This document shows positions 1 to 19,517 of a DNA stretch of 64,000 nt, piece by piece. How positions within the stretch are numbered: position 1 is the stretch's first letter; each line of letters opens with the position of its first letter. The stretch spans positions 220,430 to 284,429 of the IMG/VR virus record IMGVR_UViG_3300030419_008158; one strand, written 5' to 3'. The notes beneath the pieces are model-generated. The model was not told the origin of the DNA. It made no database searches and worked only from the letters and a program-made list of their open reading frames with translations. Both the position numbers and the translations under genes were made by a program.

Positions 1-594
1 CAAGACGTCTGGGTTTGAGACACCAAGTCTGCGACCAGTTTTCTTCATTGAATCTCTAACATGTTCGGCTTCCATGGTTCCACCACCATGAGACAGCCAG
101 ACCAGTTCCATCATATACTCTTTTATAAGAGTTGTGAATGGGTCTTTAGCGCTGAATGATTTCGCATCACTATTCTCAAGCATGTGGTGTAGATCATGCG
201 CCAGATAGTGAGGGTTAACGTCAGCTATGAATGTATCTCCACCGGCAGGAACTTCAAAAGACTTAGGGTAGACGTAAAGAAGATTGATTCCGTCTGGATC
301 CATCTCCTTCTGTATTTTCGGGTATAGCTTTCCGATGTTTGAAATGTCAGTAAGGGCAACTTGTCCTCTACTCTTGAACCCTGATACTTTACCCTGTATT
401 TCATTTGGCAGTCTATGCGCCCAGCTGAGGTCGTCTGTGTGTGCGACATAGATGTTGACGCTCTGTGGGATTGCTTTGAAGTAGTCAGCAACCTCTTCGC
501 GGACCATTACATCGTCGTCATCCTGCTTGAGATATTCAAAGTCGTCTAGAGGGACTTCCATGAGAAGGTCTCTTATGTATTCGTGTAGTAACAT
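1..594 (-). CDS. Leader-bearing (class A) putative virion cargo protein, partial (runs off window); HDxxH zincin-like motif
   Basis: Not in ORF track. ATG at 594 translates MLLHEYIRDLLMEVPLDD...YLAHDLHHMLE..., open to position 1; starts 1 nt after the stop of 596..1753. Confidence 0.8.
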   Translation of the reverse strand, partial: MLLHEYIRDLLMEVPLDDFEYLKQDDDDVMVREEVADYFKAIPQSVNIYVAHTDDLSWAHRLPNEIQGKVSGFKSRGQVALTDISNIGKLYPKIQKEMDPDGINLLYVYPKSFEVPAGGDTFIADVNPHYLAHDLHHMLENSDAKSFSAKDPFTTLIKEYMMELVWLSHGGGTMEAEHVRDSMKKTGRRLGVSNPDVL

Positions 595-595
595 C

Positions 596-1753
596 TTATA
601 ATCCTATAAAGATAACGTCGCCTGACGAGTTGTACTCTCTTGCCAAGGACGCCCAGACTCGCTTAGCTTCTGGTGAAGTTCCTGACCCTATTGTGCAGTG
701 ATGTGCTCCAATAAACACACCACCCGATGATCTAGAGTATTCTACTGCCTTGTCAATAAAGGCTTTGTAGATTTGCTTACCGTATCCCTTGCCTCTGTTT
801 TCAGGGTTGTTGATCCAGGCATTGTCAACATCATAGAATTTTGGTCGGAATACCGCTTGTCCTATCTCTACTTCTTCGTACTGACCAGTTTCTTCGTTTT
901 TAACAATGTCGGTTCTTGGTTTTGCGTTCGCTACATACTTCTTTTCTGCATCGAGATATTCAGGTGTCTTCATTAGAGCGTCAACATCTGATTGGCACTC
1001 TTTGAATCCAAGGTTTGACCCTCCTTGAGCATATCCGATGTTAGGTAGATCAACACGAAAGTAGTAGCTGTCACCTCTGTGCTTGAACGTAGCAGCCTCT
1101 GTCAAGGTTGCTGTGTATCTACTGTCACCTTCATATATGAACTGATCTACGTGATTAAAGCTTAAACCTTGAGCTGCGCCAAGAATTTCAACTTCAGCCA
1201 TGCATTCGTTTCTGGCACCACCTGCAAGATCTGAACCACTCCAGCTGGGTAATTCATCTTCTAAATCAGGAATCCAAAACCCGTAATCCTCAAGATCGTC
1301 AATCAAAAGCTCACTTACACCAATTGATTCAATGTCTTCTTCTTCTAGATCTCGAATGTCTCTAATGTCGTTGTCGATCATGTGCTTGACAATCTTTACG
1401 ATTGACGCGCGGTCAAAACAAACACTCGAGTCCATAACGTCTCTGAAAAATCCGTATCCTTTGTCGAAGAAGGTCGACTTGGAAAGCAAATCATCGAACA
1501 GCTCTTCATCGTAGTCCAGCTTTTCGAAGTAGAAGTTCTTCAGTGCAGATTCTGAAACCATGCCGAGAGTATCTTCACCGTTGAACAAGAATAGTACCCT
1601 GGAATAATCTTCTGCTGCAGTTCTTAACATATCACCGATATCGAACGATGTGCCGCTTTCGTATTCTGGCTGGATGTCAACTACGACAAGACTACCCTTT
1701 GATCCTTGCTCTTGCTCGAGTAAAACCCTTATATATTCACGCAGCAGCTTCAT
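596..1753 (-). CDS. Leader-bearing two-domain protein: isochorismatase-like N-domain + GNAT-like C-domain
   Basis: MKLLREYIRVLLE leader; LVVVDIQ motif; linker TLTE|AA; GNAT motif A ENRGKGYGKQIY. Confidence 0.6.
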   Translation of the reverse strand: MKLLREYIRVLLEQEQGSKGSLVVVDIQPEYESGTSFDIGDMLRTAAEDYSRVLFLFNGEDTLGMVSESALKNFYFEKLDYDEELFDDLLSKSTFFDKGYGFFRDVMDSSVCFDRASIVKIVKHMIDNDIRDIRDLEEEDIESIGVSELLIDDLEDYGFWIPDLEDELPSWSGSDLAGGARNECMAEVEILGAAQGLSFNHVDQFIYEGDSRYTATLTEAATFKHRGDSYYFRVDLPNIGYAQGGSNLGFKECQSDVDALMKTPEYLDAEKKYVANAKPRTDIVKNEETGQYEEVEIGQAVFRPKFYDVDNAWINNPENRGKGYGKQIYKAFIDKAVEYSRSSGGVFIGAHHCTIGSGTSPEAKRVWASLAREYNSSGDVIFIGL

Positions 1754-2346
1754 GATATCACCAGCTTTCCTGCAGCCTCAAGCGCACTCATTGTTGTGGG
1801 TGGCTTTGTGTATCTCTTGCTAAGGGGTGATCCCTGAAAGTCAACGACCTTTGGCATACCTGCGCTGCTTCGTCCGACTGTGGATGCATGTTGCTCGCAG
1901 TTATCTTCTTCTTCCGGTGTAATGGTGTTTTGCAAGTCATCAAGCTGGACGCTTTGTACGTCACTACGGTTTGACAGATAATAATCCCAGACTTCTCTTG
2001 CGGACGGTGAGACGTGATCACGATCGGAGACTAAGCCCCCACCGTTTTGAGTCGCCCATTCCATCATTACATCATATAGCATAGGGCCCCAGCCCTGGGA
2101 GGCATGTGATATTACAACTTCCCAGGCACCGCCGCACGGATGAGCAGGCTTCCTGACAGCTATTTTTCCACCGATTGGAGCTGTCGAATGAATATAGGTT
2201 CCGTAGTCAGGGTTTTTCACAACATAGCGAACTACAGCATGATCACCCTTGTTTAGGACCTCTACAAACACGTCTTCTGGTAAATCAGCAGGCCCTTTAG
2301 CAGCCTCGGTCAGCAGTTCTCTTATGTACTCGCGGAGTAGGTTCAT
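1750..2346 (-). CDS. Leader-bearing GNAT-fold protein
   Basis: MNLLREYIRELLTE leader; SQGWGPMLYD...VSPSAREVW resembles the C-domain of 596..1753 (KGYGKQIY...TSPEAKRVW). Confidence 0.55.
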   Translation of the reverse strand: MNLLREYIRELLTEAAKGPADLPEDVFVEVLNKGDHAVVRYVVKNPDYGTYIHSTAPIGGKIAVRKPAHPCGGAWEVVISHASQGWGPMLYDVMMEWATQNGGGLVSDRDHVSPSAREVWDYYLSNRSDVQSVQLDDLQNTITPEEEDNCEQHASTVGRSSAGMPKVVDFQGSPLSKRYTKPPTTMSALEAAGKLVIS

Positions 2347-3128
2347 CGCCCTGTTATCTCCTTCGCCTGCTCAAGCGTTTTAATGTTCCAGCCTTCGGGA
2401 TTTAGATCATACTTTGGGTGCAGACCTTGCATCACTAAGTCCAGCCAATACTCCCACAGCTCACCAGATTTTTCCTGAAGCTGGTTGCGTGATATACGGA
2501 TTGGTATCATCTCATCCAGCAAAGTGGCAGCTTTAGCTCTGTGGTGACCGTCTGAAAACATGAGAGATCCATCAGCATAAACTCGGACATCCAGGGGTTC
2601 CCTTATCCCACCAGCAAAATGTTTTTCAGCCCAGGCGAGTTGCTCTTCCTTGGGCAGCTTGCGAAAGTTTTGCCAATACCACTCGGTCCGGTACTCACCT
2701 GTATCTGTGTCTAAAATCTTGGCGGGTACCATCAACTGTTGGCCGGCTGTTTCAAGAAGCACAGACTCTTGCATCGTCCATGGGCCAGCCTGACCGCTTT
2801 TCAAACAGTTGACCATTGTCTCTTCGGCTGTGTATTCGTTATGAATTTCTGGTTGGAATATGTCGTAATACGTTTCTCTGTCAATCCCACCTGGTTTTGT
2901 GTCGTGGGTCTGCCAGTCAAATATCATATCACCTTTTTCAACCCAGGCATGAAGATAACTCTCGCCGCTAAACTTATCAGTCACCCTACCATGAACAACC
3001 TTGAACCTGGTTAGGTCTGAGAATTCTTCTTGAGAAGAACCCTGAGCCATCTTGACAGCATGCGGATAGCACTGGCCTATCGCAGTCTCAATCAGCAGAC
3101 CTCTTATGTACTCGCGGAGCAGGTTCAT
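2343..3128 (-). CDS. Leader-bearing two-domain protein: papain/transglutaminase-like (Cys-His-Asp) + ParB/Srx-like domain
   Basis: MNLLREYIRGLLIE; GQCY...HAWV...IFDW triad; linker MQESVLLE; FSDGHHR ParB/Srx motif. Confidence 0.6.
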   Translation of the reverse strand: MNLLREYIRGLLIETAIGQCYPHAVKMAQGSSQEEFSDLTRFKVVHGRVTDKFSGESYLHAWVEKGDMIFDWQTHDTKPGGIDRETYYDIFQPEIHNEYTAEETMVNCLKSGQAGPWTMQESVLLETAGQQLMVPAKILDTDTGEYRTEWYWQNFRKLPKEEQLAWAEKHFAGGIREPLDVRVYADGSLMFSDGHHRAKAATLLDEMIPIRISRNQLQEKSGELWEYWLDLVMQGLHPKYDLNPEGWNIKTLEQAKEITGR

Positions 3129-4345
3129 TAGTCTTCGCCCTTTGATACTGTCGTGTCATTATATTTCTTTTTCATCCAATTTGACAACGCTTTTGTCACG
3201 TCTATCTGAGACAGTCTTGTGTCGTCCGGAAACGATTTTAGGTTGTTGAGATAATCTTTAAAAAATAAATTCTCAACAGCATCATCGAGAACTCTAGACA
3301 CATCATCATCAACGTCTAATGCTGCAAGAGCTCCTGTCTCAGCCTCGTCCGGAAGCTTGTACGCATTTTTCGCAGCCATGGCAAGATTTTTTGCTGTTGC
3401 GAAACCTGGAATCATACCCTGGATTTCATCAACGACGATATCGGTTACTGTAGCAGCCAGTCCCTTGGCACCCTCCTTACCCTGCTTCTTAAGCTGAGCG
3501 TATTTGATCACCGCTCTTAGGTCGCCAACTGTCTTAACATCGTTAATTGACGTCATCTTTTTCTTTTGTTTTTTCTCTACAAGAATTTTCTGTAACAGCG
3601 CTTCCCTTATGTAACTTCTTATGATTGATTCATTCATGTACTTCTTGAGAAGGTCAATAAGCTCCTTGTCTTTACCCCTTGGTTGTTTACCAAGGTAGGG
3701 GACGACTAGTCCTTTTCTATCCCGCGGACCCTTGACCACCTCTGCAGGGCCCTCCTGTGCGTACTCATCTTCAAATTTTGTTAGGGCTTTCTTGATCTCT
3801 TCTTGGGACATCATCTTGATCGCAGCTTCGGGATGATTGGTCGATCTAAGTCCTGAAATGCTAGATGCGCCGTCCTCATGTTTGTGCGCGCCACGAATAC
3901 CTTTTTTTTGTTTCGCGCTGTAATAAGAAGAGTCAACCGAGTCCCACAGCTCGTCTTTATCCATGGTCTTGCCCAAGAATTCTATCTCATCCCCAGCCTC
4001 TTCCCACACCTCTTGTGATATGAGAACTTCTGACCCTGTATCAAACCGGTTCACTCCTCCCGATTTTTCGATGACCCAGTGCGGAACTTTGTAGGCATAC
4101 ACGTTACCGCTAACACCATGATTCCAGGCGATATCTGTTGGGTTGGGTGTTAGAAACACACCGGATTTAACGGGACCCTCTATCCAGTCTCTGGACCAGC
4201 CTTCCTCTCCTTTTGCACCCCAGCGCTCGGCCGGTTTTGGTGAAGCGGGGCGTTTGCCGATATGATAAAGTGTACGCTTGTCCTTCTGGCCTCGAATCGA
4301 TTTTTCAGATAGAATATCTCTTATATGTTTTCGAATCAAATCCAC
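3128..4345 (-). CDS. Leader-bearing protein: ART-fold-like N-domain + internal leader + helical C-domain
   Basis: Start refined to GTG 4345 (AGGA upstream): VDLIRKHIRDILSE; LYHIG...GVFLT...SEVLI; internal MNE|SIIRSYIREALL; C-domain paralogous to 53121..53897. Confidence 0.55.
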   Translation of the reverse strand: MDLIRKHIRDILSEKSIRGQKDKRTLYHIGKRPASPKPAERWGAKGEEGWSRDWIEGPVKSGVFLTPNPTDIAWNHGVSGNVYAYKVPHWVIEKSGGVNRFDTGSEVLISQEVWEEAGDEIEFLGKTMDKDELWDSVDSSYYSAKQKKGIRGAHKHEDGASSISGLRSTNHPEAAIKMMSQEEIKKALTKFEDEYAQEGPAEVVKGPRDRKGLVVPYLGKQPRGKDKELIDLLKKYMNESIIRSYIREALLQKILVEKKQKKKMTSINDVKTVGDLRAVIKYAQLKKQGKEGAKGLAATVTDIVVDEIQGMIPGFATAKNLAMAAKNAYKLPDEAETGALAALDVDDDVSRVLDDAVENLFFKDYLNNLKSFPDDTRLSQIDVTKALSNWMKKKYNDTTVSKGED

Positions 4346-4355: not shown

Positions 4356-5612
4356 CTAAAAGCATATTTCACTACTCATAACATCTTCTAAATAACCAAA
4401 TGTATTTTCTGGTTTACCGTTCAAATCAAAAGTCATTCCGGAGGTCGCATCAGCAAGAGGCTCCCATCCGCCGGTTATGTCTTTGCTCATGTTGTCTATG
4501 AAAGCGTACAGCTTTATATCATCAATTGATTCGAGCATCATCAATAGCTTTTCCTGTGTTATCGTACTGTTAGTATTGTATGACTTACCGACTTTTGATG
4601 CAGGAATTAGAAAACTTTGTCCAGGCTCATCAGTAAAAACTATGACAATTTTTTTGCTATTCGCTCGCCAGTCCACATAAAACTCATCAAGAGGCGGATC
4701 GGACTCATCTATTACATTGCCCACCCATACAGGCCATAAAAGCTCTTCCCACTGGTATGGCAAAAAAGCAGATATATTTCTTAGAGATAAATAAAGTGCG
4801 TCATATAACATCTCATACTGCCCTATCATGTCATATGTTGTTACGTCACCTAGCACATCCTGAAATTCCCCTATTGCTTGCAGGTTACTAGCCAAGTACA
4901 GAAAATTATGTTTTCCTGGCGTGTCGCCGGCGTTTTTAGGGCCCACAATAAGTGCCCACTTTACATGACTTGATTCTTTATACTTTTCAGAGAAAGCACT
5001 TGCAAGTGCATAGACAGATTCAATTTCTGGTAACATAGATGCAGACAAATCAAGTATGATCAGTACGTCGACGTCTTCTTTTTCACACTCATCGTAAACG
5101 CTAATACTTGAGTCTTCTTCAGGGTCAGAAAGTGCGTCTTCAGGTTGCTCTGCTGCGATGTCTTTGACGTCTTTTTCTTCTCTTTCACCTTGTGTAAAGC
5201 TTCCCTTGCAGAGACCCTCTTCTAAGTACCCTTTAACGCAGTATGTTGTATAAAAACCTTCGTTTCCGTCTTCTGTGACGCAAGGCTTTTCGCCCAAATT
5301 ATAGTGGTGAGGATCACACTCTAGAAACTCTTTGCACTCACTCATACTCAACACTATCGGCGGGTCCACACAGACATCTTTTGTAATCTCAATTCTCATT
5401 AGAGGTCCACTAACACCAGGGCAAAAATAATATTCTGTTCTTATACATAGTTTCTCGTATTCTTCTTGAGAATCAACTATTATAATTTCGCTGGTGTCGT
5501 TGTCATAATTCACATGTGTATGGTAGACAGGGTTTTCCATAAACCATTCCGAACAACTTACGTTGGTAAAAGACAGCAATATCATCGCAAGAAGTATTAG
5601 TGTGTGTTTCAT
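4356..5612 (-). CDS. Secreted/lipoprotein with Cys-rich region and von Willebrand factor A domain
   Basis: Hydrophobic N-terminus ending VSC; MIDAS DLSAS; VFTDE. Confidence 0.75.
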   Translation of the reverse strand: MKHTLILLAMILLSFTNVSCSEWFMENPVYHTHVNYDNDTSEIIIVDSQEEYEKLCIRTEYYFCPGVSGPLMRIEITKDVCVDPPIVLSMSECKEFLECDPHHYNLGEKPCVTEDGNEGFYTTYCVKGYLEEGLCKGSFTQGEREEKDVKDIAAEQPEDALSDPEEDSSISVYDECEKEDVDVLIILDLSASMLPEIESVYALASAFSEKYKESSHVKWALIVGPKNAGDTPGKHNFLYLASNLQAIGEFQDVLGDVTTYDMIGQYEMLYDALYLSLRNISAFLPYQWEELLWPVWVGNVIDESDPPLDEFYVDWRANSKKIVIVFTDEPGQSFLIPASKVGKSYNTNSTITQEKLLMMLESIDDIKLYAFIDNMSKDITGGWEPLADATSGMTFDLNGKPENTFGYLEDVMSSEICF

Positions 5613-6142
5613 GCTTTCACCATCATGGGGCTTTCTTCGTCTTTCAAGAGGATGAGATCGAATTGTGATTCCTGAGATGCGAATTTATCTTTTCTCTTAA
5701 TGAAGAGGTATATCGCCGTGATTGGCATAGCGGCACCAGGTTCCATTCTTATTTCGTTTTCGTCCCAGAACAGCCGCGGTTCTTGGCCCGCAGTAATTGG
5801 ATCGTAGCCTTGTCCATCGTCGATAGTAGCCTGAAGGATTACATGAATTGTCTTGCCTCTATTCGAAGCATCCCACACATCAGCAAATCTAACAGCAGTA
5901 TGAAAAGTCTCAGACCACGAAACACCGGTGGATTCATTTTGTAGCTGACCGAGGATTAATCTTGCTCGCTCGTCGCCGCTGATTTTACCCCTACGGATTG
6001 CTGACGCTAATGATGCACTGGGCATTGTAAGCTTCATCCCTCTGTATACGTTTTTCTTGCCCTTTGTGAAGGATGGTTGTCCGTAAGCTGATGCAATCCT
6101 TTCGTTCAATAGAGACCTTATGTATTCGCGGAGAAGTTTCAT
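5609..6142 (-). CDS. Leader-bearing ADP-ribosyltransferase (R-S-E class)
   Basis: MKLLREYIRSLLNE; VYRG...VSWS...DENEI catalytic motifs. Confidence 0.7.
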   Translation of the reverse strand: MKLLREYIRSLLNERIASAYGQPSFTKGKKNVYRGMKLTMPSASLASAIRRGKISGDERARLILGQLQNESTGVSWSETFHTAVRFADVWDASNRGKTIHVILQATIDDGQGYDPITAGQEPRLFWDENEIRMEPGAAMPITAIYLFIKRKDKFASQESQFDLILLKDEESPMMVKA

Positions 6143-6489
6143 TATATCTTACTCAAACTATCCGGCCATTTTTTCCATGTTCGACTGTCACCGTCAGGCT
6201 GAACCATGACGAATTTTCCGCCGCGGCGCACAACAGTCCCCACCTTTAGAGAACCGTTCTTGAGCGTCCATTGGACCCGGTCGCCTTTTTTGAATCCGGC
6301 CTTTAATTCATTTCGCTTTCGCTTGACTGTGTCAGCCACAGCTGTCCATATGACTCGAAGATCAGCTATTGGCATCTCTTCCATTTGATCCAAGATAACT
6401 TGAACGTTTGGGTTCTGGGCAGGTGGTTCTACGGGAGCATCTGCCGTTTCCTGAATCAATTTTCTTAGTTGTCTCTTAGTAATTTTCAT
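6142..6489 (-). CDS. Leader-bearing (class B) small protein with SH3/KOW-like C-domain
   Basis: Start refined to ATG 6489 (ATGA overlap): MKITKRQLRKLIQE; FKKGDRVQW...GTVV. Confidence 0.7.
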   Translation of the reverse strand: MKITKRQLRKLIQETADAPVEPPAQNPNVQVILDQMEEMPIADLRVIWTAVADTVKRKRNELKAGFKKGDRVQWTLKNGSLKVGTVVRRGGKFVMVQPDGDSRTWKKWPDSLSKI

Positions 6490-7301
6490 ACCCAACCCCT
6501 CGATGTGAACTCTTTGTGAGTCATGACTTGAATGTCCAGGCCGGCTTCTTCCGCCAGATCCTCCCATTCTTCTGCTTCTGTTGTATCGGGAACTTTCGGT
6601 TCGGTTCGTTCGGAACCCGGGTGCCACTCCGGAGGCAATCTGGTAAGTGGACCATCAGGTACGATCAACGCCATAGGTGTCCAGTTATCAACCAGCGCCT
6701 CATTGTTCTGTGTGCTTCGAAATCCGCCAAAGCTTGGATCCCAGTCTTCTTCATCCAGGACTAGAATCTTGTACTCTTCATAAGCTTCTGGGTCGTATGT
6801 CGATTGAACGCCCTTGTTGATACCAGACTGCTTCTTCATATCCGGGAATACTTCTTCGTATGCCAGTGTTCCCCCTGTGTAAAGCTGGTCCATATCATTT
6901 GCCAAAAGCGTGATATGGCCTTTGATAAGAATGCCATAGTCTCCGAATTTACCTGCACCCTTGATCTCACCTGGTAGATAAGCTGAAGCTGATAATTCAT
7001 CCTTGGAGCTAAATGATCCGTCAAGAAAAGCTTTCATCGTCTGAGGGCTTCGAAACCAGTGAACAGTTACCAAGCTGTCAAGAAACCCGCGATCAGCACT
7101 TTTGGCAAACGCCTTCTTGAGATCTCGCCCCTGTGAACGTGCTTGCTTAACTAGTTCAACATGTTCTTCATCGGTAGCGTATACACTGGGGGTTGGATTG
7201 TTCTCTTTAGTACCTGCTGCGGCGAGATCTTTAGCTAACTGTTTGCGTTTAGCTGCGTCTTCAATCAGCAGACCTCTTATGTATTCTCGGAGGATGTTCA
7301 T
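6486..7301 (-). CDS. Leader-bearing protein, possible ART-like fold
   Basis: MNILREYIRGLLIE; VHWF...ELSAS...NNEALV pattern, loosely similar to 28741..29571. Confidence 0.4.
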   Translation of the reverse strand: MNILREYIRGLLIEDAAKRKQLAKDLAAAGTKENNPTPSVYATDEEHVELVKQARSQGRDLKKAFAKSADRGFLDSLVTVHWFRSPQTMKAFLDGSFSSKDELSASAYLPGEIKGAGKFGDYGILIKGHITLLANDMDQLYTGGTLAYEEVFPDMKKQSGINKGVQSTYDPEAYEEYKILVLDEEDWDPSFGGFRSTQNNEALVDNWTPMALIVPDGPLTRLPPEWHPGSERTEPKVPDTTEAEEWEDLAEEAGLDIQVMTHKEFTSRGWV

Positions 7302-7302
7302 T

Positions 7303-8616
7303 TTATGTCTTATCTCCGACTATAGTATCTATCAGCGCTTTTCTTCTGTCCTTATCAGCCCACGCTTTTTGCGCGTACGGGTCTAGCGAGTGAAGAGGGT
7401 CGAAATACAAAAACTTTTTTCCTGGCTTTACGCTGGGTGCTGTGTATACGCTTATCCCAAAATTCCTGTCGTATCTCTCAAAAGAATGTACGCAACGCTT
7501 TCCACCGCCGCCGGGAGCATCGACAACAAACGTGGGTGTGTTAAATCCAGCAGTAACTCCTCGCACACTCTTCTCAACATCTATCGCAGTCTGAACTGAC
7601 GTTCTCATATCCTCAGTACCAGCTGTTAGGTCATGAATGTAGACATAGTAAGGCTGGATGTTAATGTAGCTTAGCTTTTTCACCAATGATATCATGCTGT
7701 CGGCAGAGTCGTTCACGTGATTCTGAAATACAGACTGATTTCTGACTTTTACTCCCCTCGAAAATAAAACGTTCATGGCGTCTTGTGTGATACCCGTAAT
7801 TTCATTTGAGTGATTGAAATGCGTATGAATACATACCTCTTTGTACTGTTTTCTTGCCTTGCTAGTTATCCTACACACAGCATCTGTCCACGCTGCGTCT
7901 GTCAAGATCTTCATCGGCATAATCGCAAGACCCTTCGTAGCAAATCGGAACCGCCTAATGTGATCAATCTTTAGAAGCTCTTCACCTAAGTCTTTTACCT
8001 GAGAGGCTTTTAAGCGATAAGAATCTCCTCCGGATATCACTACATCCTGAATTTGCTTGTTTTCGCGGAGGTACTTGAACATATCATTCCACCGATCTCG
8101 AGAGGCTTTAATAGATACTTTCTCCGCTGTGTCTGTGTCTCCCCCGACGGCGTATGCCCGAGTGCAGTATCGACAGTATACAGGGCACGTGTCTAGCGCA
8201 AGAAATAGCACCTTATCTTCGTATCGATGAGTCAGACCTTTTACAGGAGAGTCTGCCTGTTCACCCAAGCTATCGAAACGTAACATAGGATGATCAGGTT
8301 GAAGATGTGAAGCAAGCGTCAGGAATTGTCTTCTGATGGGACAATTGTCAGGATTGTTCCAATTCATCAACGAAAGAAGATAAGGCGTAATACGTGTCGT
8401 CATCGGTGCTCTTCTAAAACCTTCTTTAGCGTCTTCTAGAAACTTTTTATCCACAAGATCCTGAATTGTATTTAGAAGCTTCCTGTGATTTGTAATTGCA
8501 TTCTTTTCTTGCCACTTATGATCAACAAAAGTGTCATAGTCGATATCCCGCCATGCAGGAATAGCTCTCCAAAACTCATCGCCTCTGAATTCTGTGCTGT
8601 CTGAAAAGACGTTCAT
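7303..8616 (-). CDS. kamA: KamA-family radical SAM enzyme (lysine 2,3-aminomutase-like)
   Basis: LTHRYEDK, CPVYCRYC, ISGGD, HFNH, NQSV, PGGGGK. Confidence 0.9.
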   Translation of the reverse strand: MNVFSDSTEFRGDEFWRAIPAWRDIDYDTFVDHKWQEKNAITNHRKLLNTIQDLVDKKFLEDAKEGFRRAPMTTRITPYLLSLMNWNNPDNCPIRRQFLTLASHLQPDHPMLRFDSLGEQADSPVKGLTHRYEDKVLFLALDTCPVYCRYCTRAYAVGGDTDTAEKVSIKASRDRWNDMFKYLRENKQIQDVVISGGDSYRLKASQVKDLGEELLKIDHIRRFRFATKGLAIMPMKILTDAAWTDAVCRITSKARKQYKEVCIHTHFNHSNEITGITQDAMNVLFSRGVKVRNQSVFQNHVNDSADSMISLVKKLSYINIQPYYVYIHDLTAGTEDMRTSVQTAIDVEKSVRGVTAGFNTPTFVVDAPGGGGKRCVHSFERYDRNFGISVYTAPSVKPGKKFLYFDPLHSLDPYAQKAWADKDRRKALIDTIVGDKT

Positions 8617-9341
8617 GCAAAACCTCCAGCGTTAGGATATCTTATCTTTGCATATTTTCTATACTCACTTCTTATTTTAAGCATAAAGGGATGTAGACTC
8701 TCTTCAGAATAACCGTTCGCTTTTCCCGTTTCAAAAATTCTGTACAGCTCATAATCTATCACATCACTCAAAGGCACCTTGTTGGATTTTGCTCTCTTCA
8801 TAAACCCAGCAATGTGTGCCTTTACTTCGGCGGGACAAAGATAGTATTCAGCAGCATTTGAAAGTGACTTCCAAATCACATCAGCTGTGGGTGTCTTTTC
8901 TTGACAATCCATAAGTTCCCACGTCTCTTGCCCTGAGTGCTCTAGTTCATGTCTAATAACATCAACTAGCTCGTCATTAATGTTACTAAGAACTTGATCC
9001 GGATAATCTCGAGGCAAAACAAGATTCACACGTAAATCTGACGTCGATCTTTGGGACTGTGATGCTCCTAAATCATACTCATAAGCAGCATCTGCGTTGA
9101 CAGATTGTCCCTCTGTTACATGGATAATCACATCCCTAAGATAATCTATTTCTGTAATTTCCGGTACATTCTGCAGCCTAAAATAGGCTTCTCCAGTTTG
9201 TCTAAAATGCTCTCGAACATCTTCATCTTTTAGAGCACTTAGAACATGGCGCTTTATTATTGTCGTATATCTATCAAGCTTGCGACCGGTAATCACAGCC
9301 TCAAACAGCAAAGAGCTTATATAGTCACGGAGAAGCTTCAT
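8613..9341 (-). CDS. Leader-bearing zinc metallopeptidase-like (HExxH...E) protein
   Basis: MKLLRDYISSLLFE (ATG 9341); IRHELEH...YY..PAEVKAH. Confidence 0.65.
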   Translation of the reverse strand: MKLLRDYISSLLFEAVITGRKLDRYTTIIKRHVLSALKDEDVREHFRQTGEAYFRLQNVPEITEIDYLRDVIIHVTEGQSVNADAAYEYDLGASQSQRSTSDLRVNLVLPRDYPDQVLSNINDELVDVIRHELEHSGQETWELMDCQEKTPTADVIWKSLSNAAEYYLCPAEVKAHIAGFMKRAKSNKVPLSDVIDYELYRIFETGKANGYSEESLHPFMLKIRSEYRKYAKIRYPNAGGFA

Positions 9342-9676
9342 GCACTGCCCCACTTTTTTGCAAGTCCTTCTGATATCAGGAATGCTCTTATATCAACATC
9401 GTCCATAACATATACAGTCGCCAACCAACGTCCGTACTTGCCCTTTCCGTGTGTCTCAATTGTTACTTCTTTACCTAGGCAGAGCTCTCTAACTCTGTCA
9501 CGGGCTTTTATCGCCAAAGCTTTTTCTTCGAGGTCTTTCGTTCGAATCTCAGGTGTATCAATTCCTATGAGCCTAAGTTTTATTTTTTTGGCCCACATCT
9601 TAAAGCCCAAGTCAACTTCAGCTGTAAGCGTATCACCATCATAAACCTTTGTTATGATTGCTCTATATACATACAT
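9338..9676 (-). CDS. Thermonuclease (SNase-like)
   Basis: VYDGDT, RLIGIDTPE, GKYGRWLA. Confidence 0.9.
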   Translation of the reverse strand: MYVYRAIITKVYDGDTLTAEVDLGFKMWAKKIKLRLIGIDTPEIRTKDLEEKALAIKARDRVRELCLGKEVTIETHGKGKYGRWLATVYVMDDVDIRAFLISEGLAKKWGSA

Positions 9677-9731: not shown

Positions 9732-9767
9732 AAAAAAAAGGGCAGGTTGAAAGTTTTCAACCTGCCC
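9732..9767 (-). terminator. Rho-independent terminator
   Basis: GGGCAGGTTGAAA/TTTCAACCTGCCC stem followed by a T8 run. Confidence 0.85.
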
Positions 9768-10096: not shown

Positions 10097-11185
10097 TTAT
10101 TTTTTTAATCCACCTAAAACTGTAACTGCAATTAGGCCTGGCAGATTCTTTTGAACGTAGACACCTGAAAACAGTGTGTCTGCACGGCCACCCACGTAAG
10201 AGAAGGCTGACTCAAGTCTATTGCTTACACCGGGATCTTCTGCCATTTCGCTGGTTACGACGAGTAAAAGAACACCTGACTTGGCATTTCCTGACGGTCC
10301 TGGACACGGAGAAGATCGCAAACACCCTTGATATACTGTTGAACCCAAGTCTGCTCTAGTAACGTCTCTCACAACAGTACTTCCAAGCAAGATTCTCCCG
10401 TCTTGGTGAAGACATTTTTCCAAATCTTTTGAGTCAAAACTCTGGATTGGGGAGCTGTCATTTGCCATTTTTAGTACAACACCTAAAAGCTTGGCAAAAT
10501 TCTTGTTGGCAGCCGGATACATGTTGAGCATCCCAACTTTTCCTCGAAGAAGTTGCAACTGCTTCTCATTGTCAATTACAACATGTGGGTGATCAGAAAC
10601 ATCAGACAAAAGAAGCTTGTAGTTGTTACTAATTGTTGGGTTGAGCATTTCTTGAGCTGTCGGTTTGCTTATTACATAAATGACCTTTCCGACTGCTTCT
10701 ATGGAGCTTAGATAACGAGTTGCAGAATTATGAAGAACGTGACACGCTGAGCCGGTTCCACCACCGCCGCCTGCCAAGACGAAAATCCAGTCAACCTTTC
10801 CAATTCTCGTTCTAAGCGCGTCTTCGTAAAGGGCGCTATTTTCACCAAGCACCTTCTTGCCGACAACAACGTCTTTTCCGACACCATCGGCGCCTGGTAT
10901 TAAAAGAAAATGTGCAGGATCAACGCCGTCCGGCTGGTCTTTTACCGTGGTGTTGACAAGAAGTGTTTTGCTGAACCCTACATCTAAAAATGCTTTTGCC
11001 AGTTTTCCTCCACCCCCACCAACTCCAATAAATGCGCAGTTAATTGCACTGGGCGCTGTATTGTCAGGTAAAAGTCTTTCATCACCTTGGGCAGGTGCAT
11101 CATCATATGCTTCAACAAAACCAAAGTCAAAGTCTGTATTGTTGATGTAGTTTTCGTTAATTTCGTTCTCGTTTTCTGTACTCAT
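10097..11185 (-). CDS. Tubulin/FtsZ-superfamily GTPase (PhuZ/TubZ-like)
   Basis: IGVGGGGGK, VNT, GADGVGKD, GGGGGTGS, IDNE, T7-like FDSKD. Confidence 0.85.
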   Translation of the reverse strand: MSTENENEINENYINNTDFDFGFVEAYDDAPAQGDERLLPDNTAPSAINCAFIGVGGGGGKLAKAFLDVGFSKTLLVNTTVKDQPDGVDPAHFLLIPGADGVGKDVVVGKKVLGENSALYEDALRTRIGKVDWIFVLAGGGGGTGSACHVLHNSATRYLSSIEAVGKVIYVISKPTAQEMLNPTISNNYKLLLSDVSDHPHVVIDNEKQLQLLRGKVGMLNMYPAANKNFAKLLGVVLKMANDSSPIQSFDSKDLEKCLHQDGRILLGSTVVRDVTRADLGSTVYQGCLRSSPCPGPSGNAKSGVLLLVVTSEMAEDPGVSNRLESAFSYVGGRADTLFSGVYVQKNLPGLIAVTVLGGLKK

Positions 11186-11465: not shown

Positions 11466-11829
11466 TGGTGGAGGTGCCGGGAGTCGAACCCGGGTCCAGC
11501 ATGTCTCCTTCAGCAGGTCATTCACAAGTTTGTCTGATTTATTTCCAAACCAGCAAGGTATCTCGAAAACACCGCGTCCCTATCGAGAATCAGGATCTCA
11601 CCTGCTTGCGCCGGGAACCATTGTGGATCTTTTTTTACTCCGTGAGATCAACCACTTATCCGATCTTTGTTAACAAGGTTACCGGAAACCCCGCGACTAA
11701 GCAGCTAGTGCGTAATCGTACTCAACATTATCGTTGGCAATTAAAGTTCGTAACACTGTCACGCCATGTGTTACAGTTGGCTACTTGCACCTGAAAAATT
11801 CAACACCCTGTCGAAACCATTTCACCCCC
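11466..11829 (-). ncRNA. ssrA: tmRNA; tag (A)ANDNVEYDYALAA* at 11738->11697
   Basis: 5' GGGGGTGAAATGGTTTCGAC, 3' GGTTCGACTCCCGGCACCTCCACCA with G3.U70; internal tag ORF ending ALAA-TAG. Confidence 0.95.
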
Positions 11830-12421: not shown

Positions 12422-12793
12422 CTATTCTTCTTTTCCACCCTTTATAAGGGTGAATTTAGATCTCTTTTCATTGACTTTTCTTTCATTGTATTTTGATTTT
12501 TGTGTCTCTAGAGATAGACAAAATTCTTTCATCCAGTCCTCTCTTTCAAATGCGTAATGAACAAATTCCATCGCAATCATTGATGATATTGTATCATCCA
12601 TGTGTTCATTTTTCAATGGGGGAATCATAGAAGATAAAGTGCCATCTTTTTCAAAGAAAAGTATAGCTACAGGCAAATTTTCATGATCGCTGGGATCAAT
12701 TTCTAAAATTGCACTATGAAGAGCCTTATATAACGGACGGTCTGCTTCTCCATTACTTCCTGTGATGTTAGATTTCATTTTTCTTTTCTTCAA
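12422..12793 (-). CDS. Hypothetical protein
   Basis: ORF overlapping the pckA end. Confidence 0.6.
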
Positions 12794-14222
12794 AAAGTGT
12801 CATTAAGCGGGTACATGCATCTTCATACTGATCAAAAGTCTTCCATCGACGCTCAGGACACAAATACTGATCTACCTCGGAGTCAAAGCTGTTCGGTATG
12901 GAAAGCCCTGTCAACAAGTGTGTTATAAACCATTTTTTTGTAAGGCGTCCGGACACTATCTCTCTGATTATCTTTCGAGAGACGCTTATTGGCATTCTTG
13001 TACCCACTCCGTACCCACCTCCTGACCACCCTGTATTGACAAGCCAACAGTCTACGTTGTGATCAAGTATTTTCTTCTCTAAAAGGTTTGCATATGCATC
13101 TACATGCATAGGCATAAAAGGTGCACCAAAGCAGTGCGAAAATGTTGCCTGGGGTTCAACAATTCCGGATTCAGTTCCTGCAACTTTAGCTGTGTATCCC
13201 ATCTTAAAGTGCTGAACTGCTTGTTCTCTTGTTAACCTAGAAACCGGAGGAAGCACACCAAATGCATCACACGTTAGGAATATCACATTTTCAGGATGAG
13301 CACAGACACCTGTTTTAGATGCACCAGTAATTAGAGAAATATCGTATGAAGACCTTGTGTTTTCTGTAATTTGAGAATCTGAAAAATCTGGAACGCCATC
13401 TTTGACAATAACATTTTCTAAAATCGATCCTTCTTGCTGGCACGCATTCCAAATTTGTGGCTCAGCTTCTTTAGAAAGATTAATCACCTTAGCATAACAA
13501 CCGCCCTCAAAATTAAAAAGACCATCAGGAGACCAGCCATGCTCGTCGTCGCCGATTAGAAGTCTCTCCTCATCAGACGAAAGTGTCGTTTTTCCTGTGC
13601 CAGACAAGCCAAAAAATACTGCGGGTCGACTTCCATCTTTTGCTGTGTTGACAGAGCAGTGCATTGGAAGAACATTTTTTTGCGGCAACAAATAGTTCAA
13701 GACAGTAAACACAGACTTCTTAATTTCACCTGCGTAGTATGTTCCTGTGATGAGTATTTCTTGGCTATCCAAGTTGATAAGAACCCTAGGATCTTCCTGT
13801 GCACCGGGAGCACAGTAAAGAGTCCAGTCACAAGATTCATCTTTGTTTTCTTTGCATACAAACATGTTATTCGCAAAAAGTGCCTGCCATGAAAGCTCTG
13901 TGGTCACCTCTAGTGAAAGAGCATAGTTCGAATCCCACCCAGCTTGCAAAAATTGTGTGGTGACATTTTTATCGCTCAAATAACGAAGAATTCTTTCCTT
14001 AGTGTCAAGAAAATAAGCCTGTGTCACTCTTTGATTGTTTTCCCAATCAATTAGGGACGCCTTCTCATCGAGTGGATCGCATACAAAGAACTTAGCAGTT
14101 GGGCATCTGCCTGTATACTTTCCCGTAGTTACTACAAGCGCTCCAGTTTTTAATTGAGATGCGCCTTCGTGGGAAAGTGCCCTCTCAAGAAAAGATTTTT
14201 TAGCTCGGATCGAACTTTTCAT
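12768..14222 (-). CDS. pckA: Phosphoenolpyruvate carboxykinase (ATP)
   Basis: TGKYTGR, YAGEIKK, PMHCS, GLSGTGKTT, IGDDEH, EGGCYAK, TENTR. Confidence 0.95.
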   Translation of the reverse strand: MKSSIRAKKSFLERALSHEGASQLKTGALVVTTGKYTGRCPTAKFFVCDPLDEKASLIDWENNQRVTQAYFLDTKERILRYLSDKNVTTQFLQAGWDSNYALSLEVTTELSWQALFANNMFVCKENKDESCDWTLYCAPGAQEDPRVLINLDSQEILITGTYYAGEIKKSVFTVLNYLLPQKNVLPMHCSVNTAKDGSRPAVFFGLSGTGKTTLSSDEERLLIGDDEHGWSPDGLFNFEGGCYAKVINLSKEAEPQIWNACQQEGSILENVIVKDGVPDFSDSQITENTRSSYDISLITGASKTGVCAHPENVIFLTCDAFGVLPPVSRLTREQAVQHFKMGYTAKVAGTESGIVEPQATFSHCFGAPFMPMHVDAYANLLEKKILDHNVDCWLVNTGWSGGGYGVGTRMPISVSRKIIREIVSGRLTKKWFITHLLTGLSIPNSFDSEVDQYLCPERRWKTFDQYEDACTRLMTLFEEKKNEI

Positions 14223-14308
14223 AAAGAATCATGTCTCCTCTTACATTTCCTACATTGTAATACTCAAAAATTTTTCGTAATAAAGGAAATCTTAAGAGGC
14301 ACACACTT

Positions 14309-15148
14309 TTAGATGCGCAAAGAATCCAGTGTACCGCCTGCCATCCAATTTTTATCGCAGCGACCTTTAATGCCAGGGACTTCGCCGTGACTCGTCCACT
14401 GCCAGACATCCCAGGAGTTCCATATTTTTGTAGGCTTTCTTTTTGGGTCAACACCCTCGTTGTAACTAGCCCACCATACAGGATACTCAGCCAGCTCTTT
14501 TAGAGATGACTTTGATGCTTTCGCCAAATAAAGATTGACCGCCCATCTTGCTGTATAGATCATGGGCTTTGATCCAATTTCAGACTCAACATATTCAAGC
14601 CACGCTAAACTCCAGTCAACGTTATGCTGATCGTCTGTTTTCATTCCTGCTTCGACATCTAAGACAGGAATTAGATCTCCTGGCTGCAAAAGAGGTTCAA
14701 GCTTAGATAAAAAATGTTGTGCTTCTGCAATTGCATCTTTTCGAATACCGCTATCAATGCCCGTGTCAGGCCGTCCAAAATGATAGCCACCGACTGCGAT
14801 ATCATTGCTATGACACCCATCAATATTTCTTTTATGTGGCTTGTTTGTGTGGGTTCTTCCTTCAGTCACTTTAACCCATGCATACTCAACGCCTGCAGCC
14901 TTTACTCCTGCCCAGTCAATTTTTCCATTCCACGCTGATACATCAATTCCCATCAGAACAGGAATTCCCATTTTTCCTAATGTTTTTGGGCCTGCTATAC
15001 CATCGACGGCCAAAGAATTGTATGTTTGATACAGCTTTACAGCTGCTTCTGTTTTAGGGCCAAAATCACCATCAGGTGTGATTGATAATGAACGCTGAAG
15101 ACGTTGGATCTCTTGACCTTTGTCTCCCTTACGCATTACATAAGACAT
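14309..15148 (-). CDS. Endolysin: peptidoglycan-binding domain + GH25 muramidase
   Basis: DGDFGPKT...DGIAGPKT; GIDVS, KVTEG, GGYHF, LDVE; start refined to ATG 15148 with GGAGG RBS. Confidence 0.9.
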   Translation of the reverse strand: MSYVMRKGDKGQEIQRLQRSLSITPDGDFGPKTEAAVKLYQTYNSLAVDGIAGPKTLGKMGIPVLMGIDVSAWNGKIDWAGVKAAGVEYAWVKVTEGRTHTNKPHKRNIDGCHSNDIAVGGYHFGRPDTGIDSGIRKDAIAEAQHFLSKLEPLLQPGDLIPVLDVEAGMKTDDQHNVDWSLAWLEYVESEIGSKPMIYTARWAVNLYLAKASKSSLKELAEYPVWWASYNEGVDPKRKPTKIWNSWDVWQWTSHGEVPGIKGRCDKNWMAGGTLDSLRI

Positions 15149-15270
15149 TATTACCTCCGTGTCTAATCTGCACGGAACAGAGCATCCAAAGCATCCCGGG
15201 CAAAATCCCCGCTTTTCTCTCTGTTCACTTACAACAGAAATATCATGCACAAAAATAAGTATCTTATGCC

Positions 15271-16002
15271 CTAGGTCAGCTTCTTTATCCTGTCTAGAGA
15301 TTTTCTATGATAATTCTTGTCAAATTCACACCCTACAAATTTCCTTCCATTTCTAAGAGCAGCAACTGCTGTGCTACCTGATCCTGAAAAGAAATCTAGA
15401 ACTGTGTCACCGGGTGAAGTATTGGCTAAAACAATTCTCTCGAGAAGCTCAATAGGCTTTTGTGTGGAGTGCCAACCAGCATACTCCTTTGATGTGGTGT
15501 GATTATTTTTATACCAAACATCAGTAGGAATTTTTCCTAAAGGATTGTTTTGTGCGCCCTTTCGAACATTTGATTTCATCTTGTAGGGTATGCGCACTTC
15601 GTCTGCATTGAAGGGAAATTCCTTACCCTTAGAGTACATCAATAAATCTTCATGCTTTCTTGGAAATGTCTTTTTTGTTCGACCACCCCAGTCATAAGAC
15701 CATATAATCCAATTCTGGTAAAAGAGATCATCTTGATTGTTAAGGACGTCTAGTTTGAGACGTAAAAATGTATCAGATTTAGTTGTGCCCCACACGTAAA
15801 GACATCGCCCTGGTGCGAGAACACGAGCCGCTTCTTTGACCCATTTCTCGCACCAAGACAAATAATGCTTTTCAGACATCCACTGGTTGTCCCAGTAGTC
15901 TTTTATCGTACGATAATACGGTGGATCTGCGATAATAAGATCGACAGAATCATCTGGTAACGATGATAAAAAATTAAGACAGTCAGTGCAGTCTAATCGC
16001 AT
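15271..16002 (-). CDS. DNA methyltransferase (N6A/N4C, beta class)
   Basis: DPPY precedes HSTQKP and FSGSGST. Confidence 0.9.
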   Translation of the reverse strand: MRLDCTDCLNFLSSLPDDSVDLIIADPPYYRTIKDYWDNQWMSEKHYLSWCEKWVKEAARVLAPGRCLYVWGTTKSDTFLRLKLDVLNNQDDLFYQNWIIWSYDWGGRTKKTFPRKHEDLLMYSKGKEFPFNADEVRIPYKMKSNVRKGAQNNPLGKIPTDVWYKNNHTTSKEYAGWHSTQKPIELLERIVLANTSPGDTVLDFFSGSGSTAVAALRNGRKFVGCEFDKNYHRKSLDRIKKLT

Positions 16003-16005
16003 ATG

Positions 16006-16212
16006 CTACGCCCTTTTTTGAACAAAATCGTAGAGCTTTTCCGCAACAATCAAAACGTCTTCAGTTGCGTATGGATTGACAGGCATTCGCTGTCCTTCTG
16101 GCTTTAGACATTCATTGTCAAATTGGCGCGCGTTTCGAGATTCAAGAATCCCAATTGCCATTCCTAGCAAGTCACTTCTAAGCTCATATCCGCTCTTATT
16201 TGAATCACCCAT
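16006..16212 (-). CDS. Small hypothetical phage protein
   Basis: MGDSNKSGYELR...AEKLYDFV; AGGAGG RBS. Confidence 0.7.
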   Translation of the reverse strand: MGDSNKSGYELRSDLLGMAIGILESRNARQFDNECLKPEGQRMPVNPYATEDVLIVAEKLYDFVQKRA

Positions 16213-16330
16213 TTTTTCCTCCTTGTGTGTGTGTGTTGTAATGGGTTTCACAAAGCACTTTGCTTTGTAATTTTACTATAGTAAATCATGCATCGATGTT
16301 CACTAAGATATTTATGAACAAGGCTTGCTA

Positions 16331-16903
16331 ATGAAGACACTTGTAATATTTGATTTCGATGACACGCTATTTCGAAGCGGAGCGATGATAGGGGTTCATC
16401 GCCCAGGTAAACCAAAGCGTTATTTGAGCTCTCATGAATACGCGACATATGTGCCTAAAGAGGATGAAGAATTTGACTATGAGCAGTTTCATGTATATCC
16501 ACCAGATCCAGTACCTATTGAAAAATCCACTGAAAAGCTTCAAAGATCTGTGGGTAGTCAGGGCATTAGAAACGTAGTGATACTCACAGCTCGAACACAC
16601 CCAGAACCTGTCGAAGAAGTATTACAAAACTTTGGAATGCCGCCTGTCGAAGTCCTCGCCATAGGATCAGCTGACCCTGAAAGAAAAGCAGATGAAGTTG
16701 AAAGGCTGATCAGTGAAAGAGGATATGAAAGAGTCATTGTGTATGAAGATAGTAGTCCCAATATTGCAGCAATAAAAGCTCGTGTAAAGCCCATCCTAGG
16801 TGGAAATTTTACTGGTTTTAAAGTAAAAGCAACACCTCGAGGAGATGTCCTGCAAAAAGAATCAAAGGGTTACCGTTTCAGGCACATCCGAAACTTCACC
16901 TAG
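16331..16903 (+). CDS. HAD-superfamily phosphatase (RNA-repair/polynucleotide 3'-phosphatase-like)
   Basis: FDFDDT, LTAR, K, YED motifs; preceded by GATATTTA at 16307. Confidence 0.75.
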   Translation: MKTLVIFDFDDTLFRSGAMIGVHRPGKPKRYLSSHEYATYVPKEDEEFDYEQFHVYPPDPVPIEKSTEKLQRSVGSQGIRNVVILTARTHPEPVEEVLQNFGMPPVEVLAIGSADPERKADEVERLISERGYERVIVYEDSSPNIAAIKARVKPILGGNFTGFKVKATPRGDVLQKESKGYRFRHIRNFT

Positions 16904-17073
16904 GTCTCATTGACCTTTACCTAATACACTCATGTGCTAGCGGGCTGACAAAATCCAAGTTGTCTTCGCCATTACCGTCGTGCTCGGACACGTCTTTAGT
17001 GCGTTGCGGCACACTAAAGATTCACATAATACTCCGCAAAGCAAACACTGAAAATGATAGACTTTCAGTGAAT

Positions 17074-17490
17074 TTAATTATCATCCTTGACTCCTGAGCC
17101 GTACCATCTTGCATTCCACCCTCGTGTGTCATAGTGTGTAAAAGTTCTATAAAGCCCTATGCCACCCTTGGCCATTTTGCCCTCCTTTATTAGGCTGACA
17201 ATGACTTCCTTGACTTCTTTAGGTGTCATTCCCTTTATCTTAATGTCGGCAGCTTTTGCACGCATGTGCTGACTTTTTCTTGCGCCGCCTATTCTTCTGT
17301 TGTATTTTGGAGAGCGATACCCAGAAATAATTCGAATTGGCTTGCCAATATAATCTCTAAGAACCTGTAGATTTTTTGCCAAAAAACATACATTGTCCAT
17401 TAGCTCTTCTGGTACATTAGTCCCGTCTTTACACTTAAACTCAGATAATAAAAAATTTTTTTCTAATTTCATGTGATTAATCATATACAA
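17074..17490 (-). CDS. Peptidase M15A (Zn D-Ala-D-Ala peptidase-like)
   Basis: SGYRSP, SQH..AKAADI, FTHYD. Confidence 0.9.
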   Translation of the reverse strand: MYMINHMKLEKNFLLSEFKCKDGTNVPEELMDNVCFLAKNLQVLRDYIGKPIRIISGYRSPKYNRRIGGARKSQHMRAKAADIKIKGMTPKEVKEVIVSLIKEGKMAKGGIGLYRTFTHYDTRGWNARWYGSGVKDDN

Positions 17491-17509
17491 AAAACAAGAA
17501 CTTTACAAT

Positions 17510-18280: not shown

Positions 18281-18312
18281 TTTGTCTATTTTCCTGTCAT
18301 TAAAACTTAGTT

Positions 18313-18388
18313 TGGAGCCACTGAGAGGACTCGAACCTCCGACCTGCTGATTACAAATCAGCTGCTCTACCAGCTGAGCTACAGTGGC
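18313..18388 (-). tRNA. tRNA-Thr(UGU)
   Basis: Cloverleaf, loop TT-TGT-AA, CCA. Confidence 0.95.
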
Positions 18389-19506: not shown

Positions 19507-19517
19507 TTTTATCCGCC

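Follow-up and report, generated by a model that had tools for sequence, protein, structure and literature searches.

An array of leader-tagged genes in an uncultured T4-like jumbo phage, including candidate ADP-ribosyltransferase-fold proteins

The leader peptide and the genes that carry it

The DNA described here is the final 64 kb (nt 220430..284429; referred to below as the window) of IMGVR_UViG_3300030419_008158, a 284,429 bp IMG/VR virus record that is rated complete. Nearly all genes of the window are on the minus strand, and those near its start form an array of open reading frames (ORFs) whose products begin with a common leader peptide and include candidate ADP-ribosyltransferases (ARTs). 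Genes for a prohead protease of gp21 type (Pfam Peptidase_S77, E = 6e-27; genome 82433..83035, minus strand) and for a major capsid protein of gp23 type (E = 1e-64) are also present in the genome, the capsid protein being at most 48% identical to its counterparts in an uncultured huge phage, Flavobacterium phage immuto and Microcystis phage Mel-JY01. Because of these gene types, and the low identity of the capsid protein, the source is regarded as a distant T4-like jumbo phage, uncultured and marine, without a close cultured relative. Neither the array DNA (megablast) nor two of the candidate proteins (tblastn) found a match among 50,697 GenBank phage records, and the clade has no cultured representative among the records searched.

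The leader has the consensus M-[KN]-LLREYIR-x-LL-x-E (about 14 residues) and stands at the N-termini of eight neighbouring ORFs. When a leader profile was run against the whole 284 kb genome it recovered exactly 8 ORFs, all of them adjacent and on one strand, between window positions -1442 and 9341. An earlier prediction from the same sequence (the original prediction) had proposed up to four leader-tagged proteins of ART fold, and all four ORFs are present on the minus strand with the motifs that were quoted for them. Three of these (3128..4345, 5609..6142 and 6486..7301) are among the profile-positive ORFs; the fourth, 28741..29571, falls below profile scoring and can be called leader-tagged only in a looser sense, as its own leader is decayed and the canonical form is found in its homologues. 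The same is true of the leader of 6142..6489, and weak second copies occur inside two of the tagged proteins, the product of 3128..4345 and that of a 678 amino acid (aa) ORF at the end of the array. Taken together, the leader marks a set of 8–10 varied cargo genes, of which ARTs can be only a part.

The leader ends in L-L-x-E, and many copies also have I-R-E at positions 8–10. Glu14 is invariant in the 6486..7301 family, even where the remainder of the leader has drifted to MKLIMENWR, and in a profile comparison (hhalign) the leader is the sole region that aligns between the 6486..7301 and 28741..29571 families. A role at the level of DNA or RNA was ruled out, as synonymous codons vary freely: they differ in half (74/148) of the residue-identical codon pairs of the leader core, so that the peptide, and no DNA or RNA element, is what selection conserves.

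Candidate ADP-ribosyltransferase folds

Alt of phage T4 is an injected, NAD-using ADP-ribosyltransferase, and the original prediction described the candidates as Alt-like. As a statement about family membership this could not be upheld. Scans of the four candidates and their neighbours against Pfam and PHROGs gave no usable matches; the Alt/VIP2 model (Pfam ADPrib_exo_Tox, PF03496) had none at E <= 1 for proteins or at E <= 10 in a six-frame search of the genome, and the models for DarT (PF14487), ART-PolyVal (PF18760) and Arr-ms (PF12120) had none in the genome at E <= 10. Profile searches of the PDB with alignments of the four candidate families likewise returned no ART. Judged by sequence, then, none of the candidates is a member of Alt/VIP2 or of any other Pfam ART family. 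A motif of three residues is weak evidence when taken by itself, and support for the ART assignments comes from the invariance of the residues, the predicted folds and the recurrence of the leader.

The 177 aa product of 5609..6142 shows the pattern of the R-S-E class, that is, an arginine in strand 1, Ser-x-Ser/Thr in strand 2 and a Glu-x-Glu, conserved in both close and distant homologues. R34, W76-S77, E128 and E130 are invariant in 10 homologues and S75 nearly so, and IMG/VR homologues of 42–45% identity keep Y/H-R-G-M-K, S-W-S/T (in which S77 becomes T) and D-E-x-E. The AlphaFold2 (AF2) model (predicted local distance difference test, pLDDT, 77; predicted template modelling score, pTM, 0.75) has R34 in its first strand and S-W-S in its second, and a later strand begins at E130. 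Of its 50 best structural matches, at least 45 are chains of the ART superfamily. Foldseek matches in the PDB are weak, with ARTs appearing from E = 0.04, and the aligned ranges pair R34 with the catalytic arginines of two toxins, residue 9 in pertussis S1 and residue 7 in LT-A. Among viral models the matches (E = 4e-6 to 1e-4) are to uncharacterised phage proteins, including large mycobacteriophage proteins labelled 'ParB-like nuclease domain'. The predicted structure thus supports 5609..6142 as an R-S-ExE ART, with the motifs that the original prediction had picked out falling on the expected strands.

The arginine, Ser-x-Ser/Thr and Glu-x-Glu pattern, together with the predicted ART fold, is what this protein has in common with the Alt/VIP2 (R-S-E-2) clade, to which T4 Alt, ModA and ModB belong; it differs from that clade in its much smaller domain (~150 aa) and in the absence of ADPrib_exo_Tox matches from the entire genome. 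An ExE signature goes with arginine-specific protein modification, and because of it an arginine acceptor is suggested: the enzyme would probably transfer ADP-ribose from host NAD+ to arginines of host proteins.

The product of 6486..7301 (271 aa) belongs to a family of more than 160 proteins, found on contigs of up to 302 kb and free of any Pfam domain. Its TVHW, ELSA and NNEALV motifs contain H81, S104 and N200-E201, which are invariant, along with other polar residues, in 36 homologues. The AF2 model (pLDDT 85, pTM 0.82) places H81 in a strand (78–83) and E201 at the start of another (201–214), as in His-type ARTs; S104 is the invariant residue of strand 2, the middle Tyr of the classical triad not having been identified. 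The top seven structural matches are all ARTs, from among Tpt1, CteC, DarT and SopF, and Foldseek likewise puts CteC, OspC3 and CopC at the top (E = 0.03–0.1). The protein differs from DarT, Tpt1/KptA and CteC in having an N-terminal helical hairpin and a C-terminal extension, and by sequence it matches neither Pfam DarT nor a PDB chain. An ART fold is supported by the model here also, somewhat less certainly than for 5609..6142.

Both models resemble solved ARTs, a similarity taken as the sign of the split beta-sheet core with an NAD+ cleft that marks the ART superfamily, and the structural comparison proposed with the original prediction gave ART matches for the two proteins; of the four candidates put forward as ARTs, it is these two, one of R-S-ExE and one of His type, for which predicted structures uphold the claim. 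A fifth module, which had not been among the four, is present in the C-terminal part of the 678 aa ORF. It lies outside the window, following an internal leader-like copy near residues 403–416, and by sequence is a paralogue of 6486..7301 (36% identity over 185 residues, E = 6e-26) that retains the motifs TVHW, DELS and NNEALVDNW. The expected enlargement of the ART set is thereby extended on sequence grounds by one module, with the qualification that the leader is not reserved for ARTs.

An exhaustive library search with 3128..4345 found 419 relatives and revealed that the protein has three parts (Table 1), the C-terminal module of which also occurs as stand-alone proteins. The N-terminal domain (~120 aa) has the conserved motifs LYHIG, GVFLT, NVYAY and SEVLI, and Tyr69 and Glu92 (domain numbering) are invariant in 36 sequences. 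Members of this domain family are found alone, in leader-tagged proteins, and inside giant proteins of 1,100–3,200 aa that also carry topoisomerase IB, 2H RNA ligase-like, HAD_SAK_1, LigD phosphoesterase and PAP2 domains; the multi-module homologues of 3128..4345 reach 3,196 aa and have at least three Pfam domains. A comparison of language-model features, made with a stand-alone homologue of the domain, had an Arr cluster as its top match (14 of 30 hits; score 0.96, with 174 of 256 features), and the domain is similar in size to the 131 aa representative of that cluster. Arr is a rifampin ADP-ribosyltransferase (Pfam Arr-ms), from which the domain differs in lacking a hidden Markov model (HMM) match, both in the genome and among the 36 members, and in a histidine that is not invariant. 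Profile searches with the domain gave no match in the PDB or Pfam, and a Pfam scan of the 36 members gave nothing consistent and no Arr-ms. On balance we lean towards an ART fold for this domain, which would then probably be a small Arr-like enzyme, the evidence for this being weak.

The fourth candidate, 28741..29571, lies 20 kb from the array. It belongs to a large and well conserved family (604 hits, those listed being at least 61% identical), and H163, T165, S186 and N262-E263-Y264 of its C-terminal domain are invariant in 25 homologues. Its nearest named language-model clusters (DarT/PARP, Arr and Tox-ART-HYD1) are all ART families, at a score of 0.79 that the tool treats as a lead only. 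For an ART fold in this domain the chances appear about even. A Nudix gene adjoins 28741..29571 and was considered as a functional link, which was dropped because the adjacency is not conserved.

Several observations weigh against the ART reading of the set as a whole. Sequence profiles tie none of the candidate proteins to a known ART family, and hhalign comparisons among the four candidate families aligned the leader only, or nothing. The 10 homologues of 5609..6142, all from marine metagenomes, were the only ones found, and its AF2 model rests on these 10 sequences. In the N-terminal domain of 3128..4345 the putative catalytic His is replaced by Tyr in 6/36 sequences, and the Arr match of its homologue carries a low 'recognition' value, which the tool rates as weak evidence. 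The His-type pattern claimed for three of the original candidates stands for 6486..7301, with its invariant H81, S104 and E201 and its structural matches, and is blurred in 3128..4345 by the variable His.

These points bear most directly on an alternative in which the motifs of 3128..4345 and 28741..29571 are chance look-alikes in domains of other folds, leaving three ART modules and not five. Both domains lack profile matches in the PDB and Pfam, comparison of their profiles with those of the two supported ART families yields nothing, and their language-model scores are either a lead only or high with low recognition. On the other side, silence in profile comparisons carries little weight because the two supported ARTs are equally silent towards each other; the nearest named clusters of both domains are exclusively ART families (Arr-ms, DarT/PARP, Tox-ART-HYD1), the conserved residues follow the order of ARTs (His or Tyr, then a mid-domain Ser or Tyr, then Glu), and the 23-residue spacing from His to Ser in 28741..29571 is the same as in 6486..7301. 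The look-alike explanation is a serious one, and we consider it to have rather less than an even chance. What the models and alignments point to is an array holding at least three modules of predicted ART fold, with active-site residues intact and outside any described sequence family; at least two of the tagged proteins, and perhaps five, would represent new ART families.

A second alternative grants the fold and concerns what the proteins do. They may not be Alt-like modifiers of host proteins but NAD+ glycohydrolases, counter-defence enzymes, or enzymes of nucleic acids such as RNA-repair 2'-phosphotransferases of the Tpt1/KptA kind and DarT-like ADP-ribosylators of DNA or RNA. The proposal chiefly concerns the His-type proteins, together with the N-terminal domain of 3128..4345, and it draws on the topoisomerase IB, 2H RNA ligase-like, HAD_SAK_1, LigD phosphoesterase and PAP2 domains that accompany the latter in giant proteins, on the occurrence of PolyA_pol and HAD_SAK_1 cargo in related arrays (see below), and on the Nudix gene beside 28741..29571, an adjacency that, as noted, is not conserved. 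Against it, CteC and SopF, which modify proteins, match 6486..7301 about as well as DarT does; the Arg-His-Arg-Arg set of Tpt1 is not evident among the invariant residues of 6486..7301, which include one His only, although no test was aimed at it; and 5609..6142 bears the ExE signature associated with arginine-specific protein modification. This alternative seems unlikely. The His-type enzymes themselves (6486..7301 and its paralogue) resemble DarT, Tpt1 and CteC, and may have nucleic acid, a phosphate group or protein as their acceptor.

The repertoire of the array recalls that of the polyvalent proteins described by Iyer et al. 2017 (PMC5512222): an ART is accompanied by cargo that resembles ParB, zinc peptidases and acetyltransferases (as judged from weak hits or a motif only), the N-terminal domain of 3128..4345 has homologues within proteins of 1,100–3,200 aa that carry nucleic-acid end-processing domains, and delivery along with the DNA is predicted in both cases. 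Unlike polyvalent proteins, most of the modules here are separate genes, each with a leader of its own, and only two of the products are fused (those of 3128..4345 and the 678 aa ORF); the Pfam ART-PolyVal model has no match. The zinc-peptidase-like and ParB-like domain types, seen here in 8613..9341 and 2343..3128, are hubs of phage polyvalent proteins.

Related arrays and likeness to T4 capsid targeting

Arrays of leader-tagged genes also occur in other uncultured phages. A strict DNA pattern drew 75 IMG/VR loci, 36 of which have no leader ORF and may be chance DNA matches; the other 39 contain 132 leader ORFs, with at least three in 21 loci. One 302 kb contig has 13 leader hits within 20 kb, a 168 kb contig has 6, and a 312 kb contig has a row of nine leader genes, the last of which is a homologue of 28741..29571. 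In five large relatives (180–293 kb) the motif is present 4–6 times each, always at a single locus and on one strand, and all five encode an S77 protease. The cargo is diverse: single-linkage clustering of 141 proteins, 13 of them from the window, gave 36 clusters, with 20 singletons. Many homologues have leader copies between their modules, an arrangement that fits polyproteins cut by a protease. In the 302 kb relative (L008), a PolyA_pol-type nucleotidyltransferase (nt 15381..17039) and a HAD_SAK_1 RNA-repair domain (nt 19161..19985) are each followed by an internal leader and a further module, which suggests that enzymes of RNA repair are also among the tagged cargo.

In phage T4 the capsid-targeting sequence is MKTYQEFIAE (PMC8442874), and these 10 residues suffice for loading a protein into the prohead core; targeting depends on residues 4 and 7 and processing on residues 8 and 10, with cleavage by gp21 following Glu (PMC9026906). 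The internal proteins of T-even phages are a diverse group with only this targeting sequence in common (PMC3012670). The leader of the array shares with the T4 sequence M1, K2, E6, an aromatic residue at position 7 and I8. As with the T4 internal proteins and Alt, otherwise unrelated proteins (8 ORFs here, with cargo falling into many unrelated clusters) have only a short N-terminal peptide in common; the leader ends in hydrophobic-x-Glu, in a phage that has genes of the gp21-type protease and the gp23-type capsid protein, Peptidase_S77 being present in 5/5 related genomes also; and the cargo includes predicted ADP-ribosyltransferases, as Alt is one. In the phage's own capsid protein the sequence V-L-K-E followed by Ala occurs at the position expected for cleavage of a propeptide, and the protease itself begins with L-L-T-E.

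A T4-like capsid-targeting mechanism is, by this analogy, the best reading of the leader; the head packaging, cleavage and injection of the tagged proteins, and their targets, host RNA polymerase included, are likewise inferred. The leader would dock its protein into the scaffolding core of the prohead in the manner of the T4 sequence. Cleavage by the gp21-type prohead protease would follow, on the C-terminal side of the Glu of L-x-E, with an additional cut possible after residue 10 in those copies that have I-R-E. The trimmed protein would remain in the head and enter the host along with the DNA. Where a leader lies within a fused protein, cutting by this protease would release the modules as separate enzymes.

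The system differs from that of T4 in the length of the leader (14 residues against 10) and in the number of tagged genes: this array has 8–10, and a relative packs as many as 13 leader copies into 20 kb, compared with a handful in T4. Leader copies are also found within fused proteins. Three further observations do not favour head loading. T4 internal proteins are small and basic, and the cargo here consists mostly of enzymes (115–678 aa). The head genes are 140 kb away from the array in the record. Finally, the T4 late-promoter motif, TATAAATA, has one occurrence in the window, which is the level expected by chance and shows no enrichment.

It is rather improbable that the leader is instead a shared N-terminal helix with another role, such as docking to a partner or compartment that the proteins share, being recognised by the HExxH peptidase or radical S-adenosylmethionine (SAM) enzyme of the array, or a signal for membrane association, oligomerisation or turnover: it is true that in both AF2 models (5609..6142 and 6486..7301) it is part of a longer helix that runs past Glu14, that R19, which lies past the proposed cut site, never varies in the 6486..7301 family, that the array has its own HExxH protein and a KamA-like radical-SAM gene (the latter also found in a relative's array), that a tubulin/FtsZ-like gene (10097..11185) adjoins the array and that the head genes are distant, but the leader resembles the T4 sequence at positions of mapped function and has L-x-E at its end, 6/6 genomes checked encode a gp21-type protease, and unrelated cargo with only a short N-terminal peptide in common is exactly the pattern of T-even internal proteins (PMC3012670).

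The explanation we favour, with some reserve, is therefore that the minus-strand block from about nt 9676 to beyond the start of the window is a cargo array, the products of which are leader-tagged, loaded into the head and include ART-fold enzymes. More speculatively, and with the balance of probability somewhat against it, these phages may form an uncultured marine T4-like jumbo clade in which one portable 14-residue peptide, acting as both address label and cut site, defines the whole injected proteome, in which copies between modules give rise to polyproteins cut in the capsid, and in which the cargo includes several ART families invisible to sequence searches, some perhaps acting on nucleic acids. 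In that case, what uncultured phages inject could be learned directly from their sequences.

Among the weapons of a phage, injected proteins arrive in the host first, and predicting them from sequence is very hard. Should the leader prove to direct proteins to the head, searching for its motif would be a simple way to list what an entire uncultured group of ocean phages (at least 39 IMG/VR loci) injects. Packaging of ARTs in the head is considered common among myoviruses (PMC9503650), and the array, which would add two to four ART families that Pfam models do not see, extends that idea for contractile-tailed phages. Since the candidate enzymes are small (~150–270 aa), they should be easy to express and assay.

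Features and neighbouring genes

Table 1. Leader-tagged genes, their candidate domains and associated features (window numbering unless stated; subdivisions follow the gene to which they belong)
Feature	Position	Strand	Leader	Remarks
Leader-tagged ORF, 678 aa	1..594 (genome 218987..221023)	minus	556..594	N-terminal 198 codons in window; extends 1.4 kb past window start
Leader-tagged cargo, 385 aa	596..1753	minus	1709..1753	C-terminal part weakly acetyltransferase-like
Leader-tagged cargo, 198 aa	1750..2346	minus	2305..2346	28 leader-tagged homologues in IMG/VR loci, the most of any window gene
Leader-tagged cargo, 261 aa	2343..3128	minus	3087..3128	C-terminal part weakly ParB-like (DGHHR; PHROG E 0.002)
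Three-part leader-tagged protein, 405 aa	3128..4345	minus	4304..4345	GTG start at 4345
N-terminal domain (possible ART fold)	3926..4294	minus
Internal leader-like copy	3587..3625	minus
C-terminal module	3131..3586	minus
Putative R-S-ExE ART, leader-tagged, 177 aa	5609..6142	minus	6101..6142	ART core 5612..6067
R34	6041..6043	minus		putative active site
S75-W-S77	5912..5920	minus		putative active site
E128-N-E130	5753..5761	minus		putative active site
Decayed-leader gene, 115 aa	6142..6489	minus		Leader MKITKRQLRKLIQE; another phage's homologue has canonical leader
Putative His-type ART-fold protein, leader-tagged, 271 aa	6486..7301	minus	7260..7301	ART core ~6657..7094
H81	7059..7061	minus		key residue
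S104	6990..6992	minus		key residue
E201	6699..6701	minus		key residue
Leader-tagged cargo, 242 aa	8613..9341	minus	9300..9341	ATG at 9341; HExxH motif
Terminator-like hairpin, strong	9740..9767	minus		12-bp stem then T run; just upstream of gene block
Decayed-leader gene, 276 aa	28741..29571	minus		Leader MLHEFIKEAIKEE; 20 kb from array
C-terminal domain (possible ART fold)	28744..29109	minus
H163	29083..29085	minus
S186	29014..29016	minus
E263	28783..28785	minus

The product of 8613..9341 may be a zinc peptidase, because of its HExxH motif. Two minus-strand genes inside the array have no leader. One, 7303..8616, encodes a lysine 2,3-aminomutase-like (KamA-like) radical-SAM protein; a gene matching LAM_C is likewise situated within the array of the 168 kb relative, and IscA-like and NifU-like genes of Fe-S assembly come after the array, just beyond the window (L014 8388..8991). 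The other, 4356..5612, encodes a protein of 418 aa with an N-terminus like that of a signal peptide or lipoprotein and a faint match to von Willebrand/integrin-beta-like sequences (E = 0.04).

The hairpin at 9740..9767 probably marks the start of a separate transcription unit; a scan for promoters of sigma-70 type in the window gave a count at chance level. The first gene after the hairpin, 9338..9676 on the minus strand, is a homologue of staphylococcal nuclease (Pfam SNase, E = 4e-14), and in two related contigs an SNase gene is found directly downstream of the 6486..7301 homologue. Immediately upstream of the array is the tubulin/FtsZ-like GTPase gene 10097..11185, also on the minus strand (Pfam Tubulin, E = 8e-5, which is below the curated cut-off).

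Further into the window is a phage tmRNA gene (11466..11829, minus strand) with the tag peptide ANDNVEYDYALAA, and eight tRNA genes are present between nt 12333 and 28045. The minus-strand region 12768..34152 is rich in auxiliary and metabolic genes, which include those for PEP carboxykinase, a GH25 lysozyme with a peptidoglycan-binding domain, an N6/N4 DNA methylase, a B12-binding radical-SAM enzyme, a HAD/PNKP-like phosphatase, a PP-loop ATPase, a Nudix protein, a thioesterase, a pyridoxal phosphate (PLP)-dependent enzyme and an IMPDH/GMP reductase.

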